DNA from: Phyllobates terribilis
Lineage: Eukaryota
NCBI RefSeq assembly: GCF_046119375.1
Contig: NW_027362769.1
Location: forward strand, 101,804,001 to 101,868,000
Length of the DNA: 64,000 nucleotides
Direction: 5' to 3'
Both the position numbers and the translations under genes were made by a program. This document shows positions 51,731-64,000 of this stretch, piece after piece. Position 1 is the stretch's first letter. Each line of letters begins with the position of its first letter. Below the pieces are notes generated by a model. It did not search any database. It saw only the letters and a list, made by a program, of their open reading frames with translations, and was not told the origin of the DNA.

Positions 51731-53373
51731 CAGTTATATGAAAAAGTTTGGGCACCCCTATTAATCTTAAGCTTAATGTTTTATAAAAATTGGTGTTTTA
51801 GCAACAGCTATTTCAGTTTGATATATGTAATAACTGTTGGACACAGTAATGTTTCTGCCTTGAAATGAGGTTTATTGTACTAACAGAAAATGTGCAATCT
51901 GCATTCAAACAAAATTTGACAGGTGCATAAGTATGGGCACCCTTATCATTTTCTTGTTTTAAATACTCCTACCTACTTTTTACTGACTTACTTAAGCACT
52001 TTTTTTGGTTTTGTAACCTCATTGAGCTTTGAACTTCATAGCCAGGTGTATGCAATCATGAGAAAAGCTACTTAAAGTGGCCACTTGCAAGTTGTTCTCC
52101 TGTTTGAATCTTCTCTGAAGAGTGGCATCATGGGCTCCTCAAAACAACTGTCAAATGATCTGAAAACAAAGATTATTCAACATAGTTGTTCAGGGGAAGG
52201 ATACAAAAAGCTGTTTCAGAGATTTAACCTGTCAGTTTCCACTGTGAGGAACATAGTAAGGAAATGGAAGAACACAGGGACAGTTCTTGCTAAGGCCAAA
52301 AGTGGCAGGCCAAGAAAAACATCAGAAAGGCAGAGAAGAAGAATGGTGAGATCAGTCAAGGACAATCCTCAGACCACCTCCAGAGAGCTGCAGCATCAAC
52401 TTGCTGCAGATGGTGTCACTGTGCATCGGTCAACTATACAACGCACTTTGCACAAGGAGAAGCTGTATGGGAGAGTGATGCGAAAGAAGCCGTTTCTGCA
52501 AGCATGCCACAAACAGAGTCGGCTGAGGTATGCAAAAGCACATTTGGAGAAGCCAATTTCTTTTTGGAAGAAGGTCCTGTGGACTGATGAAACCTAGATT
52601 GAGTTGTTTGGTCATACAAAAAGGCGTTATGCATGGCGGCAAATAAACACAGCATTCCAAGAAAAACACTTGCTACCCACAGTAAAATTTGGTGGAGGTT
52701 CCATCATGCTTTGGGGCTGTGTGGCCAATGCCGGCAACGGGAATCTTGTTAAAGTTGAGGGACGCATGGATTCCACTCAGTATCAGCAGATTCTTGACAA
52801 TAATGTTCAAGAATTAGTGACATAGTTGAAGTTACGCAGGGGATGGATCTTTCAGCAAGACAATGATCCAAAACACCGCTGCAAATCTACTCAGGCATTC
52901 ATGCAGAGGAACAATTACAATGTTCTGGAAAGGCCATCCCAGTCCCCAGACCTGAATATCATTGAACATCTGTGGGATCATTTGAAGAGGGCTGTCCATG
53001 CTCGGCGACCATCAAACTTAACTGAATTGGAATTGTTTTGTAAAGAGGAATGGTCAAAAATACCTTCATCCAGGAAATCATTAAAAGCTACAGGAAGCGA
53101 CTAGAGGCTGTTATTTTTGCAAAAGGAGGATCTACTAAATATTAATGTCACTTTTCTGGTGAGGTGCCCATACTTATGCACCTGTCAAATTTTGTTTGAA
53201 TGCAGATTGCACATTTTCTGTTAGTACAATAAACCTCATTTCAAGGCAGAAACATTACTGTGTCCAACAGTTATTACATATATCAAACCGAAATAGCTGT
53301 TGCAAAAACACCAATTTTTATAAAACATTAAGCTTAAGATTAATAGGGGTGCCCAAACTTTTTCATATAACTG
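51731..53373 (+). mobile_element. Full-length Tc1 (copy G1), downstream of PJVK
   Basis: ~230-bp TIRs starting CAGTTATATGAAAAAGTTTGGGCACCCC, TA TSD; transposase with TAG at 52595 and 52823 plus a small deletion near the end. Confidence 0.96.
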
Positions 53374-53924: not shown

Positions 53925-54226
53925 TCACTTCATTCTCTTGTGCCACAGGTCAAAGCACGGTACAGCGTGCAGCCGGACGTATTTCTGTCCATTGAAAGAG
54001 CACTCAAAGCAGCCGTACACGGTTTCTCTTTTAGAGTTGCCCATCCCGCACAGAGCGCACGGACCCTTGGGTATATTATTATTCAGGAGGTTAGAACGAA
54101 TGTGAGCTCCTTCTCGCATGTAGGTAGTAGAAATGTCCGTCATGCTGGCAGCCTTGTCATAGTAATCAGAAAATATGTCGTCCATGTAGGAATCTTCATT
54201 TGCAATGATATCCATTGTTCTTTTTC
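53925..54226 (-). CDS. PJVK: PJVK last coding exon with Cys/His zinc-binding motif
   Basis: (G)[32 protein letters not shown]...[48 protein letters not shown], matching the pejvakin C-terminus; CAG acceptor. Confidence 0.97.
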
Positions 54227-55242
54227 CTGCCCAATAAAACAATAATTAGTTAAAAACTTCCATATCAAAAAATACAGGAATCTTAAAATGGGTAAAATTG
54301 CAAAACAGTTGTAAAAACAAGAAGTCTTGCAATTTACTTCTCAAGAACGGAGGGATTTTTAATTCTATAGTTTATCGCCCGGGGCCTAGACTACCAGCAA
54401 CCTCCACAGTCTATCAGAGGTGATCAGTTTCCTAAGCAAGGAGCTAAGCCCGTACAAACTATTCTCTATAGAGCTTGTAAGCACTGCTCTGACATTGACC
54501 AGATCGCTGGATCCAGCCAATGTCGGTGCTTCTGCTCTCCTACGATGATGCAGAGGCAAAACTGCCTTTGCTAGCTGCATCAGAGAGCGTATAGTTTGGA
54601 CCAATATCAGATCTGTGGGGGTCCATCACCCGGCACCACCACCAATCCATGGTTTGAACTGCAACTCTGGTCTTACTGAAGTGAGTAGGAGATAATCTAT
54701 TGTCCTCAGCAATGGCAACGTCGAAAAAGACAGGCATCACAGAAGAAAAAAGGCCAGAGTGACACCGTTTGTCGATTTATACTCAATGGCTTCATTGGGG
54801 GTTCTGTCTGAATCCCATTTTTACTCAATTTAGATGGAAACCCCCGATGCAAGTCCTCCACGTTGAGCAAAGTATAAATGAGTCTCTTGTCCATAAGTCC
54901 AGTTTCCGCGACGACATGCCAACAATCGAGATCGCCAAGCAAATTTGTATATGGGCATTTTCCACTGCTGGCCATTTAAATGAATGTCATATATGGATGG
55001 ACTAGGTCCAGCAATGCAAAAGCCATTCTACTAGAAGCTCTACGCACTGGCTAATACAGGAGGGTCCTAAGGTTTGCTCGTACGAAGGACACGGACAGTA
55101 CTGCTGCCCCTGTAGGGTGCAGAATAGAAGCATCATCATCATCACTCATACCACAGGCTGTCATGATATGCTGATATGGCTCAGTCCATTTGCGATACAA
55201 TGATGGTAACGTCTTCACAAACCTCTTGGTTCCCCTTCTTAC

Positions 55243-55353
55243 CGGTGAATAAGATGCCCGTGCGGTACAAGGTGTTCCTTATGGCGTTTAATGAAAAAGA
55301 TCTACTGGGCTCCTTCTCAAAACCTCCTTTAGAAGCGGAGGACACACATAGTT
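55243..55353 (-). CDS. PJVK: PJVK penultimate coding exon
   Basis: (E)LCVSSASKGGFEKEPSRSFSLNAIRNTLYRTGILFT(G); CAG/GTAAG flanks; 111 bp; 94-bp intron upstream. Confidence 0.92.
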
Positions 55354-55447
55354 CTGGAAAACAAGGACATACATCACTAAGATCTGGATATCTTACAATG
55401 ACCTAATGGTAAATTTAATTTGGGTTTTCTAAGAGTGTGAAACTTAC

Positions 55448-55565
55448 CAAAGTGACCATCTAGGTGAATGTACAGATCAAAAATACTAAACGCTATGGTT
55501 GTGTGCGCTGGGAATACTATAGCTTTGTCACGTCCTTTGTGGTTTTTCTCATCAATTATGTGAAA
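55448..55565 (-). CDS. PJVK: PJVK internal coding exon
   Basis: [39 protein letters not shown]; CAG/GTAAG flanks; 118 bp. Confidence 0.96.
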
Positions 55566-55610
55566 CTGAGATTAAAAAGTGAAAAAGAAAATTCATTAAT
55601 AAATAACATA

Positions 55611-57259
55611 CAGTTATATGAAAAAGTTTGGGCACCCCTATTAATCTTAAGCTTAATGTTTTATAACAATTGGTGTTTTTGCAACAGCTATTTCAGTTTG
55701 ATATATGTAATAACTGTTGGACACAGTAATGTTTCTGCCTTGAAATGAGGTTTATTGTACTAACAGAAAATGTGCAATCTGCATTCAAACAAAATTTGAC
55801 AGGTGCATAAGTATGGGCACCTCACCAGAAAAGTGACATTAATATTTAGTAGATCCTCCTTTTGCAAAAATAACAGCCTCTAGTCGCTTCCTGTAGCTTT
55901 TAATGAGTTCCTGGATCCTGGATGAAGGTATTTTTGACCATTCCTCTTTACAAAACAATTCCAGTCCAGTTAAGTTTGATGGTCGCCGAGCATGGACAGC
56001 CCTCTTCAAATGATCCCACAGATGTTCAATGATATTCAGGTCTGGGGACTGGAATGGCCTTTCCAGAACATTGTAATTGTTCCTCTTCATGAATGCCTGA
56101 GTAGATTTGGAGCGGTGTTTTGGATCATTGTCTTGCTGAAAGATCCATCCCCTGCGTAACTTCAACTTTGTCACTGATTCTTGAACATTATTGTCAAGAA
56201 TCTGCTGATACTGAGTGGAATCCATGCGTCCCTCAACTTTAACAAGATTCCCGTTGCCGGCATTGGCCACACAGCCCCAAAGCATGATGGAACCTCCACC
56301 AAATTTTACTGTGGGTAGCAAGTGTTTTTCTTGGAATGCTGTGTTTATTTGCCGCCATGCATAACGTCTTTTTGTATGACCAAACAACTCAATCTAGGTT
56401 TCATCAGTCCACAGGACCTTCTTCCAAAAAGAAATTGGCTTCTCCAAATGTGCTTTTGCATACCTCAGCCGACTCTGTTTGTGGCATGCTTGCAGAAACG
56501 GCTTCTTTCGCATCACTCTCCCATACAGCTTCTCCTTGTGCAAAATGCGTTGTATAGTTGACCGATGCACAGTGACACCATCTGCAGCAAGTTGATGCTG
56601 CAGCTCTCTGGAGGTGGTCTGAGGATTGTCCTTGACTGATCTCACCATTCTTCTTCTCTGCCTTTCTGATGTTTTTCTTGGCCTGCCACTTTTGGCCTTA
56701 GCAAGAACTGTCCCTGTGTTCTTCCATTTCCTTACTATGTTCCTCACAGTGGAAACTGACAGGTTAAATCTCTGAAACAGCTTTTTGTATCCTTCCCCTG
56801 AACAACTATGTTGAATAATCTTTGTTTTCAGATCATTTGACAGTTGTTTTGAGGAGCCCATGATGCCACTCTTCAGAGAAGATTCAAACAGGAGAACAAC
56901 TTGCAAGTGGCCACTTTAAGTAGCTTTTCTCATGATTGCATACACCTGGCTATGAAGTTCAAAGCTCAATGAGGTTAAAAAAACAAAAAAAGTGCTTAAG
57001 TAAGTCAGTAAAAAGTAGGTAGGAGTATTTAAAACAAGAAAATGATAAGGGTGCCCATACTTATGCACCTGTCAAATTTTGTTTGAATGCAGATTGCACA
57101 TTTTCTGTTAGTACAATAAACCTCATTTCAAGGCAGAAACATTACTGTGTCCAACAGTTATTACATATATCAAACTGAAATAGCTGTTGCTAAAACACCA
57201 ATTTTTATAAAACTTAAGCTTAAGATTAATAGGGGTGCCCAAACTTTTTCATATAACTG
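55611..57259 (-). mobile_element. Full-length Tc1 (copy G2) in a PJVK intron, near-identical to G1 and inverted relative to it
   Basis: Same TIRs, TA TSD; ORFs 56394..56906 and 55839..56387 in one frame separated by a single TAG. Confidence 0.96.
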
Positions 57260-57940
57260 TATGTACGATAAAAAAGCCAATATCCACAGAAACAGGCAAA
57301 AAAAACTTTTGGAAGATTGAATTCCAACCAGCCCATGCAGAAGACGAGTCAATCTGAAGCTATTAGTGAAGCAGATTTTCTCGTTATCAGTTTTCTCATG
57401 AAGCCGGTTGAATGGTTATTCACAAGATAGTCAATTATCTGCTATCCATAGGATATGGGATAACTTACTGATTGCTGGAGGTCAAATCAACAGGATCCCC
57501 AGTGATCCTGAGAATGGGGCTCAGGAATCGGGCTCTGCAGAGTCCTTTTTTAAATGAATCGGAGCTGCACTCGCTCGACCCTGGCTTCATTCATTGTCTA
57601 TGGGAGCGCAAGAGAAAGCACCGCACTTAGTTATTTCCAGCAGTCTCATAAACAAAGCATAGAGCCAGGGTCAAGCAACTACATCTTCGATCCATTCAGG
57701 ATGGGGCTCTGCAGATCCCAGCTCCCACCCAGATTCAAGAGGCCGATTCTAAGGATCATTGAGGGTCGTAGTGGTCAGAGCCTCAGCGATCAGTAAATTC
57801 TGTCCTGTCCATAGAATAAGACAATTTAAAGGGGATGTCTGCTTTCAGAAAACCATATTCTATAACAGGGATGTCAAACTCAGACACACAGAGGGCCAAA
57901 ATGAAAAACTTGGACAAAGTCGCAGTCCAACCAGTATACA

Positions 57941-58968
57941 GTATAATGGGCTCCACATAGTCCTCCATACAGAATAATGGGCCCCACATAGTCCTCCATA
58001 CAGAATAATGGGCCCCACATAGTCCTCCATATAGAATAATGGCCCCACATAGTCCTCCATATAGAATAATAGGCCCCACATAGTCCTCCATATAGAATGA
58101 TGGCCCCACATACTCCTCCATATAGAATAATAGGCCCCACATAGTCCTCCATATAGAATAATGGCCCTACATAGTCCTCCATACAGAATAATGGCTCCAC
58201 ATAGTCCTTCATACAGAATAATGGGCCCCACATAGTCCTCCATACAGAATAATGGGCCCCACATAGTCCTCCATACGGAATAATGGGTCCACATAGTCCT
58301 CAATACAGAATAATGGTCCCACATAGTCCTCCATACAGAATAATGGGCCCCACATAGTCCTCCACACAGTATAATGGGCCCACATAGTCCGCCATAGCTC
58401 CATACTGTACAATGGGCCCCACATAGTCCTCCATACAGAATAATGACCCCGCATAGTCCTCCATACAGTATAATGGGCCCCACATAGTCCTCCATACAGT
58501 ATAATGGCCCCACATAGTCCTCCATACAGTATAATGGCCCCACATAGTCCTCCATACAGTATAATGGCCCCACATAGTGCACGATACAGAATAATGGCCC
58601 CACATAGTCCTCCATACAGTATAATGGCCCCACATAGTCCTCCATACAGTATAATGGGCCCCACATAGTCCTCCATACAGTATAATGGCCCCACATAGTG
58701 CGCGATACAGAATAATGGCCCCACATAGTCCTCCATACAGTATAATGGCCCCACATAGTCCTCCATACAGAATAATGGGCCCCACATAGTCCTCCATACA
58801 GAATAATGGGCCCCACATAGTCTTCCATACAGTATAATGGCCCCACATAGTCCTCCATACAGAATAATGGGCCCCACATAGTCCACCATACAGAATAATG
58901 GCCTCACATAGTCCTCCATACAGAATAATGGCCCTACATAGTCCTCCATACCGTATAATGGTCCCTAC
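57941..58968. repeat. 30/31-bp minisatellite, about 33 units, in a PJVK intron
   Basis: Unit GCCCCACATAGTCCTCCATACAGAATAATG(G); explains the long repetitive ORFs here. Confidence 0.95.
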
Positions 58969-59251
58969 TTGGCAAGTGATATTCAGTTTGGTTTTATATA
59001 TCTATCATAGCTTACAGCCCAAAGTTTTCTGACCCCTTTAATGATCGCTGGGAGTTCAACTGCCGGGACCCAAGGATACGGATAACTTACTATCTTGGTA
59101 ATAACATTTCAAGTCTCAGTCTTGCCATTAACCCTCACTCAGCCCACATTTTTTAGCTGTCCTCTTTTATTAAGTTCATAGAAAAAAATTTCTGATTGTC
59201 ATCAAAGTCACAATGTTGGGACATAAGAAAGTGTCAGATCGTCAGACTTAC

Positions 59252-59393
59252 CCTCATGGCTTCTCCCCGCATACCAGCATGGACAGACAGAGAACACTGG
59301 CGAGTTGTCCGGATGCTCTCCATCACCACACATAAGATTTCCTTACCATTTTCTCTTGATTGCCGAACTAAACAATGATCCAAGTCAATTGTC
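59252..59393 (-). CDS. PJVK: PJVK internal coding exon
   Basis: [47 protein letters not shown]; AG/GTAAG flanks; 142 bp. Confidence 0.96.
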
Positions 59394-62300
59394 CTACGAA
59401 CAAGAAGAAGAATGACTGGAGATTGTAGACCATCATATATCATATTTTCCTACTACAGAAATAATGTAATATGACCACATGATGGTGGGATTTTGGGGGC
59501 ATTGACAGTGCAGGACTTGGTGACTTACACACCTTTTAAAAGATAAGTAAAGTGAGGGCATAAAGTAATATTACACATCGGATCTAAGGTGGAGGTCTAT
59601 GGATGGTGGAGGAGACATCAGGTGGTAAATATGCAGTGGAAACAGATTTTATACATAAAATTCATGAATGACAATGAATGTGATAATCCAGGCAAAGCTG
59701 ATACTCTGTCACACTCCCCTTGATATAGCACCAGTGTGAAACGCGCGTCAGGGCGGTTGTGGTGGTCTTGATTGTCCTGTGATTATATCATGGGTAAGTA
59801 ATATTCTATCAGCTCTGATTATGGATTAGCCTTTTTGAATGGGGTCAATTTGAGACCATATATACATACCAATGTCTGGCAGACATTTTTTTAAAGCACA
59901 GCTTATATAAATTAGGTCAGACCTGACTTACCACCACCTTTCTTTATTTGATTTTCCTCTTTTGATTCCTCGTGTAATGTAATATTATTGCATGTTCTTT
60001 GTTTATAAGGATGTTCAATAAAAATTTATTTATTTTATCTATCTCTGCGAGTGGTTTAATGAATACTTTGGGGTTGTCTGTCACACCTAGTGTATGGCCT
60101 GCAAGATGGTGAATATAACAGGGGTTCTGGCTCTGGTGTTCTGTCTACCTTTAATCACACACCATATCTGCAGGACCTGCACAAGACTAGTGTATATAGT
60201 TTGCCCATAGTACATCATTAAGTAATGTTGAAGCCACCAACCCGGAAAGTTGCCTTCAAAAGTTAGCAAGTCTTTGCAGTTTTTGGTTCATGAAACTGCA
60301 CCCTCCTCACCCCATTCACTGACTTGTCACACCCTGTTCTCCAAATATTTTGGGGACTTGCTAACGCTTCAAAAAGTCTGAAAAGTCTTCCCTTATTTCT
60401 GTAAACTCTCAGATATTTCGGCATAGTTGGCAAATATGTGTTAGGCTCTCGGGTCACGCCACCGTATTTTCTCTCATCTGAGAGAATCAGGTTGATTATG
60501 CTAATGATACTCTGATCAGAGTGTGATCTGATTTTCCCGGATGAGGAGAAGATGGGAAAAAAATGTCTCCATCTTCTCCGTTTTGTCAGTCCGTGAAAAT
60601 CGGACTGCAGTCAGATGTCATCCGAGTGCAGTCTGATTTTTTCCAGTCTTGGGTCCTGCATCAATTAATGGCATATCCCATCCATTTACCATCCACACAG
60701 CCCAATTATTAGCAATATGGTGGAAAAATAAAACTTAGCTTTAGTATTAATATACACATTGCACAGATAGATATACTGTACATTGTACTTTCTTTCTTTG
60801 CTATATATCAACTATTTAATTTTTTACACTATAACTCATTCTTTTCAGGCAGACATGCTTTAATAGAGAGCCAGCGGCCATGTTGCGCCGGACAGTAGCC
60901 CTGCAAAACACCTCCTACCTGACGGTGTCTCTTCTGATTAGCAGTCCTGGAGTTACGTCATGGTGCAAAGATGACGTTGCGGCAGGTCTACAAATCATAA
61001 GAGGCACCGGGAATTGCCACAAGTAGATGGTCACAAGTCTTCCTGCCAAGGACCGGAGTCATCTCTGCTATATATCTGTCATACATACTGTACTACGCTG
61101 ACTCCGGCTCATCCACTCACATTTATTTGTAGTTCAGTAATTTGTCCAGCAGATGTCACCAGTGCACCAATGACAATATTTTCCAGGGTAACTGCAATTC
61201 ATAACCTGGATTCATGTATTACATCCAGTAATGCCTATTCGGGCTCGTTCATACCAGCGTAGACATTAGACTAGTGCTATCAGATCTTCTATCAGATAGC
61301 GCTCGGACCAATATTCTATGGGGCAGTGCAGAGCTGTTTTTTTTTCTCATGCTGATTTAGAGCACAGATCAGATGGCACGTACCTATTTAAGTATATGGG
61401 CGCGTGAAAGTCAACGGACTGTATGCAGATGTCATCTGAGTGCAGTCAGATTTCTGTGGACAGAGACAATGGAGAAGATGGAAAAATTAAGTTCTCCATC
61501 TTCTCCACAGTTGTGCTGCGATTCTCTCATCCAAGAGAATCGGATCACACTAAGCTGACACTCGGCTCAGACTCTGATCAGAGATTGATCGGAGAGTCAT
61601 TAATATAATCGATCCGATTTGCTCATGTCACCCCAGCCTTATTAAGTCTCTGTTCACATCTGTATTTTTTTTTTATTATTATTATTTTCTTCTGCTCCAG
61701 CATTTAACAGTCATGCTGGATACCTAACATGTCGGACGCCAGCGGTTCCCGATGGACCCCCACTGACTGGAGTTTTGTCCGGCATTCTCGTTCTGATCTG
61801 CAATAGAAGCTGTGAATGGATTGTCCAACACAGATGTGAACAGAGCCCAATACAGACCTTGATGATGTTTTGTTCAAAAGCTGCAAATGAAGAGAGAAAT
61901 GGTCATATGGAAACGCTTCACATGCATAGGAAAAATTTGGGGTGTAAATAAATCTGCTGTGAAGATAAGTAACATGTCACTTCAGGTAAGAAAAACGTGA
62001 GGACTGACCCCATTGATTGATAATAATGGTGCAGACCATAAGGTTGCCGTAAATTCCTGGACATTCCCTAAAATGCGTCCTTGATTTGTTTGAAGCTGGA
62101 GGAGTGTTTGCAGGCTGTTAACATTGTAATGCTCATCATTTTACAGCTTCCGGCGATTGCTGCTGATGTGCTCCTATCAGTATACTGCGCTACAGACATG
62201 GATCACTTAAAATACTCATCATCCTTTACTGCGTTCAAATGTGTCCAAAATTGAATACGTTTTCCAAAAAATTAATGATTTTGGAAACCTTTGCAATAAA

Positions 62301-62807
62301 AACAGCCAATCTCTGGTACATTCATTGCAGAAATCCAACTTTTACTCTACATTCACTTCCCACGATGAGTATCTGGTGAGTATTTAATGTTGCAGATTTT
62401 CTGCACCTATTAGGCTACGTTCCCACGATGAGTTTTCGGTGAGTTTTTTTTACACTGCGTATTTTCGAAAAAATGCAAGTAACCTATTTTAGTGCAGAAA
62501 TCTTGCAACATAAAAAACTCACCATAAGCTCATCATGGGAACCTTTTCATGGCAAATGAAACTGTATGATTTACTTATCTTCCGCGGGTTGAGCTCTGTA
62601 TCTCTGCCGCTCCGCCAGTCTTTGTTGATCGGCTGCAGTGGTGGTTTGCGCCATCTGCATCAGCTAAACTGCTGAGCTCACTAACTGGCTGTAATGCTGG
62701 TTTCTTCTTATATGATTGCGGAGACTTGGGGTCCGGATGTGACGGCTACCTCTGCCCCCCTATAGCTACGCCCCAGAGTAACCTACATGCATGATGTGAT
62801 ACTGTAC

Positions 62808-63003
62808 CTGGATATCAGCTCCTTTAGGAGTGTGGGGACTTCTACTTCGTGTTTGGTCACAATGCCAAAGGAAGCCTTAACTGCAACAGAATCGGACCCG
62901 TAGATATTCATCCCCACATCATTCATGATCTGATTCCCGTGTCTCCTGTTTAAAGACACATCTGACTTATCTTCGTAATTCAGCAGCTGATAAGAACTGA
63001 CAC
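62808..63003 (-). CDS. PJVK: PJVK (pejvakin/DFNB59) internal coding exon (second coding exon; first lies beyond the window end)
   Basis: (G)[64 protein letters not shown](R); gasdermin-N-like; AG/GT flanks; 196 bp. Confidence 0.96.
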
Positions 63004-63179
63004 CTATCGAAAAAAAAGCAAATAGATTGTAAAACAAAAGGATAAAGACCCTAAAAACAATAGTGCCATTGAGATGTTAAAAATAACAATAGCAAACATT
63101 GACCCTCATGGCACCCCACACAGTAATAGTGACCCCTTAGGTCCCCTTTACTGCCCCCATACAATAATAGGGAAGTAGT

Positions 63180-63482
63180 GTCCCTGCACAGTAATAGAGC
63201 CCACCCTCATGGCACCCTGCACAGTAATAGAGCCCACCCTCATGGCACCCTGCACAGTAATAGAGCCCACCCTCATGGCACCCTGCACAGTAATAGAGCC
63301 CACCCTCATGGCACCCTGTACAGTAATAGAGCCCACTGTCATGGCACCCTGCACAGTAATAGAGCCCACCGTCATGGCACCCTGCGCAGTAATAGAGCCC
63401 ACCCTCATGGTACCCTGCGCAGTAATAGAGCCCTCCCTCATGGCACCCTGCACAGTAATAGAGCCCACCATCATGGCACCCT
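63180..63482. repeat. 33-bp minisatellite, about 9 units
   Basis: Unit ATGGCACCCTGCACAGTAATAGAGCCCACCCTC. Confidence 0.95.
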
Positions 63483-63483
63483 G

Positions 63484-64000
63484 TGTAACATACCTGGCGG
63501 CGTCCTTGCATGGTGGTCCATCTCCCACTGTGCAAGAGAGCGCACTTGATCTCCTGTCCAGAATGTCTCTCTGGCTTCCCTCCATGCTGTCTGTTTGTGT
63601 CTGTCTCTGCTGCTTAAGGGCGGCGCCCGATCACTTCCTGCTCTTTGTACCTGCTGTGGGTCACGCCCCTTGTGCGTCCTCAGCCTATTGCTGTCTGACA
63701 CTTGGTATATAGCTCAGCAGCTCCCTTCTATCCCTGCCTGAGCATAGTGTTTTCCTTCAGTGTGTGTTTGCACTCTGAAGGTGCCAGGTCCCGTCTTTGT
63801 TTCCTTGTCTGCCTTTCCTGGAGGCTGTATTTCCAGGCCTGTCTGAACTGTGTCCTGTATGTCTCCTGCTTTGCGGTATTAGTTCCCGTGTCTGAACTAA
63901 GTCCTGTATGTCTCCTGCTTTGCGGTATTAGTTCCCGTGTCTGAACTGAGTCCTTTCTGTGTATCTTGTCTGTCCTGTCTGAACACGCTCCTTGCCTGTT
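63484..64000. mobile_element. Possible LTR running off the window end
   Basis: Begins TGTAACA after the minisatellite; composition shifts to a TC-rich tract with an internal ~46-bp duplication; second end not visible. Confidence 0.35.

Follow-up and report, generated by a model that had tools for sequence, protein, structure and literature searches.

Pejvakin (PJVK, DFNB59) is a human deafness gene and an odd member of the gasdermin family, and its tail is termed in reviews a zinc finger of unknown function. Where this tail comes from is the question raised by the stretch of DNA that we have analyzed, 64,000 nucleotides of the frog Phyllobates terribilis (contig NW_027362769.1, positions 101,804,001 to 101,868,000; the window from here on), which carries exons of pejvakin on its minus strand (between 53925 and 63010). 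The original prediction, made from the sequence alone, was that the last exon had been exapted from the 3' end of a piggyBac-like transposon in an early vertebrate. Our analysis indicates that the last ~64 residues of pejvakin are very probably a domesticated cysteine-rich domain (CRD) of the type found in the piggyBac-family proteins piggyBat, PGBD2-4 and Paramecium PiggyMac (Pgm), fused to a pore-forming domain like that of GSDME. We show here the homology of the sequences, the register of the ligands, the age of the fusion and, from taxonomic breadth, the direction of descent.

Predicted zinc ligands in the last exon of pejvakin

The peptide on which the prediction was based, running from PKGPCALC to WHKRMK and the stop, is the reverse-complement translation of 53925-54071. 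The plus-strand translation of these positions is an unrelated peptide, so the feature lies on the minus strand, which had been left unstated. The peptide is the 3' end of an open frame (54242-53925). A pyrimidine-rich tract and a CAG/G acceptor just upstream of ~54226 place the exon start near there and the zinc motif in a single terminal exon, as had been claimed. When the exon was used in a word search, 35 proteins matched (E 3e-53 to 5e-26), several of them named Pejvakin in UniRef/NCBI, with identities of 65-83% to those so named. The extent given at first was exact for the peptide and too short for the domain, which starts ~16 residues upstream, at ~54119, and includes there an eighth ligand at 54102-54104. 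The features of the exon are as follows, all on the minus strand.

53925..54226, minus: terminal coding exon of PJVK, 99 full codons and the stop (open reading frame, acceptor context, named orthologues, tblastn)
53925..53927, minus: stop codon of PJVK (translation)
53928..54119, minus: region of homology to the piggyBat/PGBD4-type CRD, exon residues 36-99 (hhalign alignments; 26.3 bits with the CRD profile described below)
54102..54104, minus: His41 (mammalian H294), invariant upstream His and predicted zinc ligand 1, aligned to G-x-H of the transposases
54048..54059, minus: first CxxC, Cys56 and Cys59 (mammalian C309 and C312), in register with the CxxC of the CRD
54000..54032, minus: [RK]-x-E-T-x-Y-x-C loop and second CxxC, Cys72 and Cys75 (mammalian C325 and C328), matching piggyBat LRSETRYMCKFC and the metagenomic RKETRY.C / RKTTVYKC
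53940..53972, minus: His86, Cys90 and His95 (mammalian H339, C343 and H348), matching L-[CH]-x2-[PA]-C-F-x2-[FY]-H of piggyBat, PGBD4, PLE-wu, PgmL and metagenomic loci

The codons of the eight ligands are, from His41 to His95, 54102-04, 54057-59, 54048-50, 54009-11, 54000-02, 53967-69, 53955-57 and 53940-42. The residues themselves (H41, C56, C59, C72, C75, H86, C90 and H95) do not vary among 31 pejvakins, those of hagfish and lamprey among them, and follow the spacing H-x14-CxxC-x12-CxxC-x10-H-x3-C-x4-H, with a C5H3 composition. This is the order of the Pgm/piggyBat-type CRD as we take its definition from PMC8086355 and PMC11707139 (an upstream His, CxxC, CxxC, a Cys or His, and Cys-x3/4-His). 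PiggyBat and PGBD2-3-4 (zf-Tnp_2; structure 9C0F) have it as H...CxxC...CxxC...[C/H]-x3-C-x4-H, piggyBat with the same C5H3 set. The upstream His, which acts as a ligand in Pgm-type CRDs (PMC8086355), stands in pejvakin 14 residues ahead of the first Cys and aligns with the invariant G-x-H of the transposases. The His after the conserved Leu had been noted, correctly, as replacing one Cys, and it is no departure from the family, since piggyBat, PGBD2 and PGBD3 also have His at this point.

The likeness extends to family-specific residues that are not ligands, i.e., the E-T-x-Y-x-C loop, the Leu before ligand 6, the Pro/Ala-Cys-Phe and the aromatic residue before the last His. Their counterparts are LRSETRYMC, L-H, ACF and Y-H in piggyBat and RKETRY.C, L-C, PCF and Y-H in PGBD4-like elements. 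When aligned by eye with File S1 of PMC8086355, frog pejvakin falls beside LRSETRYMCKFC...PLHKGACFEKYH of piggyBat and RKETRYFCAEC...PLCVVPCFEIYH of PGBD4. The C-F-x2-aromatic-H end comes within a few residues of the stop in pejvakin and in these proteins alike, as had been noted for the family: His95 is 4 residues before it in pejvakin, and metagenomic transposases usually have their stop 0-10 residues past the CRD, with a minority carrying longer tails. The differences are that pejvakin has 9 and not 3 residues separating the second CxxC from the Leu, Trp where the others have Tyr/Phe, and H-x14-C instead of H-x17-C. The 9-residue spacer, which seems to be inserted relative to PGBD4, is of equal length in Pgm, PgmL1/2/5 and Tetrahymena Lia5. 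Such a tail is not a chance open frame, because its identity across 30 vertebrate orthologues is 63-93% and 27 of its 63 columns are invariant.

Profile similarity to piggyBac transposases and the rival explanations

A sample of CRDs independent of pejvakin was collected by scanning JGI metagenome contigs with a DNA pattern for C-x2-C-x3-L-C-x2-P-C-F-x2-[FY]-H, for which we estimate, from its information content, ~1 chance match. At least 120 loci matched; viral contigs gave 0 matches. The translations were evident CRDs at the ends of open reading frames, and the [RK]-x-E-T-x-Y-x-C motif lies outside the pattern used to collect them. Nine of the 10 long reading frames scanned were full-length piggyBac transposases (DDE_Tnp_1_7 217-308 bits). 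One termite-associated contig (L030:5856-6252, minus strand) had three CRD-encoding frame ends within 400 bp, which represent the 3' end of a piggyBac-like gene repeated in tandem.

Compared by hhalign, the pejvakin tails matched 28 non-redundant piggyBac CRDs with a probability of 94.6%, E 7e-8 and a score of 42 over 42 columns, the first CxxC being in register. The whole last exon matched the C-terminal 170 residues of the nine transposases (probability 89%, E 2e-6, 53 columns). In this comparison exon residues 36-98 were aligned, the upstream G-x-H included, and residues 1-35 had no detectable similarity, so that the transposon origin proposed for the exon is supported for its CRD part only. 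The frog tail and the published piggyBat CRD, compared by BLASTP, gave 22.7 bits (E 6e-5 as a single comparison) with six ligands in register. When columns of the pejvakin alignment were shuffled keeping the eight ligand columns fixed, the scores averaged 15.9 (standard deviation 3.9, maximum 29.8) and none of 120 reached 42. With the L, P and F selected by the DNA pattern kept in place as well, the mean rose to 24 (standard deviation 5.6), and 2 of 1000 shuffles reached 42.

A hidden Markov model (HMM) of the 28 CRDs scored the 31 pejvakin tails at 17-32 bits, 30 of them at 23-32, with 26.3 bits for the frog (per-sequence p 2e-10). The same model, run against 177,635 distinct PDB sequences, retrieved a single protein, the piggyBat transposase 9c0f (44 bits, E 1e-10); among unrelated chains ribosomal uS14 came highest with 18.4 bits, a value that no C1, PHD, RING or FYVE chain exceeded. 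The profile similarity to verified piggyBac CRDs is therefore significant and above that of other zinc fingers. With the ciliate Pgm CRD alone the hhalign match was weak (E 0.013) and its alignment took in just the first four Cys. Among piggyBac-family CRDs there are two folds, the PHD-like one of Trichoplusia ni (CxxC-CxxC-CxxH-CxxC) and the Pgm type, which is common to piggyBat, PLE-wu and human PGBD2-4 (Guerineau et al. 2021, PMC8086355). The T. ni CRD is likewise the C-terminal zinc domain of a piggyBac transposase, but it has another fold and ligand pattern (PMC8086355, PMC11707139) and no similarity to pejvakin, which has two CxxC doublets only (hhalign score 10, E 0.18), and we rejected it as the parent type. 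As far as these profiles tell, the likeness is specific for the piggyBat/PGBD4-like type.

Some proteins met in these comparisons deserve separate mention. The lowest of the pejvakin scores, 17.4 bits, belongs to P0041 from Knipowitschia caucasica (233 residues, annotated as uncharacterised), in which a Cys-rich N-terminus with signal peptide is joined to the last pejvakin exons and His stands where Cys-Phe is otherwise preceded by a conserved Pro; either a chimeric gene model or a diverged paralogue of fish is the probable explanation. Two metagenome reading frames, L080:296-2026 (minus) and L005:429-1220 (plus), end in a piggyBac-type CRD with 47-50 bits on the HMM. In L080, the one of the two scanned with Pfam, a BTB/POZ domain lies at the N-terminus (94 bits), DDE_Tnp_1_7 is absent and zf-Tnp_2 misses the CRD (E 0.01); L080 may represent a second case, parallel to pejvakin, of a host protein that captured the CRD alone.

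Pfam by itself gave sub-threshold matches. For the exon, the window peptide and each of the 27 orthologue tails zf-Tnp_2 (PF13842) came first, over profile positions 16-59 of 60, with 15.5-16.6 bits for the window peptide and E values of 0.003-0.016 in this set. Two facts here weigh against a transposase origin. The score is under the gathering cut-off of 24 bits, and Pfam does not annotate the tail; and C1_2 does as well as zf-Tnp_2, with a best E of 0.0024 against 0.0029, both below threshold. The check in Pfam suggested with the original prediction has come out only in part, zf-Tnp_2 ranking at the top with 16 bits, sub-threshold and tied. However, the zf-Tnp_2 model is weak even for true members, since two of the nine verified transposases (22-34 bits) fall below the cut-off, L022 and L062 with 22.3 and 23.5 bits, the latter also matching C1_2; the model misses real transposase CRDs and captured ones alike.

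The tie bears on the explanation that the tail is a cellular zinc finger, C1-like or of another cross-brace type, that came to resemble the piggyBac CRD by convergence from the metal-binding topology. Pgm and piggyBat CRDs are themselves C1-like in topology, the two-zinc cross-brace being shared with the C1 domains of the protein kinase C type, and in fold searches many C1 domains appeared with a Z as weak as that of the PiggyMac CRD. Those searches (Foldseek against the PDB, VIA wide, and Atlas) used the first of two poor models, AlphaFold2 giving a pLDDT of ~50 for both the whole exon and the tail alone. They returned weak and mixed cross-brace zinc fingers, among them a chordate PGBD protein at TM 0.39, and our case does not rest on them. 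On the other hand, C1_2 (14.7-16.4 bits, cut-off 26) covers the CxxC-x12-CxxC half only, 24-26 residues, while zf-Tnp_2 covers 43, and C1_1 does not match at all. Moreover, 9 of the 28 verified CRDs cross-match C1_2 at the same level, with E down to 0.003, which makes the tie a property of the CRD family arising from the shared topology. The C1 motif is H-x12-C-x2-C-x13/14-C-x2-C-x4-H-x2-C-x7-C, which differs from pejvakin in spacing and composition. The C1 domain has two Cys3His sites (PMC11707139), C6H2 and not C5H3, and a genuine C1/DC1 domain (PF00130/PF03107) was rejected on these grounds. Convergence on metal binding would also have to account for the matching motifs outside the ligands ([RK]-x-E-T-x-Y-x-C, L-[CH]-x2-P-C-F-x2-aromatic-H and the upstream G-x-H), for a similarity that survives shuffles in which the ligands are kept, and for the gap between other zinc fingers in the PDB (18.4 bits at most) and 30 of the 31 pejvakin tails. 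We regard it as unlikely.

The homology could also be real and the capture indirect, by exon shuffling from a host gene with a domesticated CRD or through an older cellular domain shared by both. It agrees with this that no transposon ends, target-site duplication or remnant of the transposase core are left, that exon residues 1-35 are unrelated to transposases, and that CRD-bearing proteins other than transposases exist, such as the BTB/POZ protein L080 and L005. But over more than 500 million years the loss of transposon landmarks is to be expected, the CRD is found throughout the piggyBac transposases, from those of ciliates to those of mammals, and a profile search of 1.84 billion representative proteins gave no host tail closer to pejvakin than the transposase CRDs, so that we consider an indirect route very unlikely. 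That search, at E 0.001 or better, found only pejvakins and a spurious protein, P0046 (493 residues, a fish Ig-domain repeat protein, E 7e-5 through three repeated weak stretches), which is a false positive due to its internal repeats. A word search with the tail alignment found only pejvakins up to E 10. Such blank results say little, since a match of 25-30 bits in a domain of 50 residues cannot pass in databases of this size. Among PDB sequences, the exon and the tail profile met with chance matches to eL37 and Numb and with none to piggyBac. In the feature search of the ESM Atlas with a language model, clusters with zf-Tnp_2 and DDE_Tnp_1_7 were among the nearest named ones (15 of 30 matches, score 0.93, 184 shared features).

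Age, direction of descent and relatives of the domain

The pejvakins of the hagfish Eptatretus burgeri (P0043) and the lamprey Lethenteron camtschaticum (P0044) keep all eight ligands together with the motifs R-[ED]-T-V-Y-G-C and V-P-C-F-D-L-W-H. Since both carry an intact tail, the fusion of CRD and gasdermin predates the split between cyclostomes and gnathostomes and, judging from these sequences, is to be placed no later than the last common ancestor of living vertebrates. The early-vertebrate age of the original prediction, for which tracing the exon in lampreys had been recommended, is in this way supported and refined. Ever since, the tail has been almost frozen. Ciliates, insects and mammals have piggyBac proteins with the CRD, and the Atlas and metagenome matches add clusters labelled as arthropod and oomycete. 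The direction is thus from transposon to host, because the CRD is widespread in piggyBac proteins and the pejvakin tail is found in pejvakins only among the 1.84 billion proteins.

Upstream of its CRD pejvakin has the gasdermin N-domain and not the DDE_Tnp_1_7 core of piggyBat and PGBD2-3-4; it is not a transposase and shares with them the CRD alone. The CSB-PGBD3 and PGBD1 proteins are fusions of host and transposase sequences in which the transposase-derived domain is kept under purifying selection, and the same kind of domain under the same kind of selection is found in the host proteins Lia5 and Tpb of Tetrahymena, Lia5 being annotated with zf-Tnp_2. All of these are nuclear and related to chromatin, while pejvakin has a CRD of ~64 residues standing alone on a protein of a membrane-pore family, one implicated in peroxisome turnover and hearing. 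A further relative is the CRD of Pgm (6ZOP), also domesticated, with the upstream His ligand, a two-zinc cross-brace of C1-like topology and the same x10 spacing between ligands 4 and 5 as in PJVK. The Pgm domain has lost DNA binding and binds protein instead, the histone H3 tail (PMC8086355). It differs in remaining on a catalytic transposase core, in having Cys as ligand 5 and in its last spacing, C-x3-H.

The capture in pejvakin is far older than the mammalian PGBD1-4 and counts among the oldest piggyBac domestications of vertebrates, being common to cyclostomes. Its unusual traits are the retention of the CRD alone, the gasdermin partner, which forms pores and is not a chromatin protein, and the pan-vertebrate age. 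No open-access paper was found that relates pejvakin or PJVK to piggyBac or to transposases, in agreement with the original prediction, whose author was not aware of such a statement. The link is new as far as that literature shows; a prior mention elsewhere is possible.

Predicted fold and function, and other features of the window

With the assignment to the CRD family, 9C0F and 6ZOP become available as templates, eight ligands can be named and two zinc ions are predicted for the domain. In the Pgm CRD, H701, C723, C726 and H749 coordinate Zn1, and C712, C715, C737 and C745 coordinate Zn2 (PMC8086355). Cryo-EM of piggyBat shows two zinc ions in a cross-brace with the Pgm topology, at one Cys3His1 and one Cys2His2 site (PMC11707139). 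From these relatives we infer the stoichiometry, the fold and the redox mechanism of the pejvakin tail, which most likely folds as a C1-like cross-brace finger with two zinc ions. With the pairing transferred from Pgm and piggyBat, site 1 would be formed by H41, C72, C75 and H95 (H294, C325, C328 and H348), a Cys2His2 site, and site 2 by C56, C59, H86 and C90 (C309, C312, H339 and C343), a Cys3His1 site. The tail might then be a zinc-dependent interaction module that replaces the autoinhibitory C-domain of gasdermins.

This assignment offers a new reading of a published result. C328 and C343 are required for the interaction of pejvakin with LC3B induced by reactive oxygen species (ROS) (review of Defourny et al., PMC8147788). 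They map to Cys75 and Cys90, that is, to one ligand of each predicted site. Because of this, mutation of C328 or C343 should unfold the domain and oxidation should release zinc, and a zinc-redox switch would be the most economical mechanism, the tail probably acting as a redox-sensitive zinc switch. A more detailed version is possible, if doubtful: oxidative stress would hit ligand cysteines in both sites, zinc would be released, and the domain would open, leading to LC3B recruitment and pexophagy, with a loop that may bind a polyanion. If so, the 'ROS-sensing cysteines' and the C-terminal deafness variants would both be lesions of the zinc sites.

The invariant R-E-T-x-Y loop of pejvakin corresponds to the loop with which piggyBat, through R543 and E545, reads the major groove of DNA (PMC11707139), its CRD binding a palindrome in the transposon end. 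There is no known DNA binding for pejvakin. Since the piggyBat counterpart reads DNA and the Pgm domain binds a histone tail, the conserved loop is a good candidate for a ligand-binding surface and may still bind nucleic acid or another polyanion, e.g., a membrane lipid head-group.

The remainder of the gene was located by tblastn with the 352-residue mammalian pejvakin P0039, which gave five colinear high-scoring segment pairs (HSPs) on the minus strand, four of them upstream of the last exon. The upstream exons encode the gasdermin N-domain (tblastn; the pejvakin cluster of the ESM Atlas is PF04598), and the gene is pejvakin, of the gasdermin family. This query detected no match in the window for the first ~68 codons. 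The segments are:

62807..63010, minus: upstream exon, gasdermin N-domain, mammalian residues 69-136 (tblastn HSP)
59213..59395, minus: upstream exon, mammalian residues ~136-185, the HSP overrunning the exon end (tblastn)
55449..55568, minus: upstream exon, mammalian residues ~183-222, the limits being those of the HSP and not exact splice sites (tblastn)
55160..55354, minus: upstream HSP of PJVK (tblastn)
53928..54242, minus: HSP of the last exon (tblastn)

A regular-expression scan of the window detected no CRD-like peptide other than that of pejvakin. There are also transposase reading frames of the Tc1/mariner type: the intron that precedes the last three exons has a pair of them (173 and 184 residues, 55842-56915, minus), and a fragment of 92 residues (52826-53104, plus) lies downstream of the gene. 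Within two introns (~57860-59000 and ~63140-63630) all three minus-strand frames stay open for 130-350 codons with repeat units such as GGLCGAIILY... and GAMRVGSITVQ..., a pattern typical of tandem minisatellites and not of genes.
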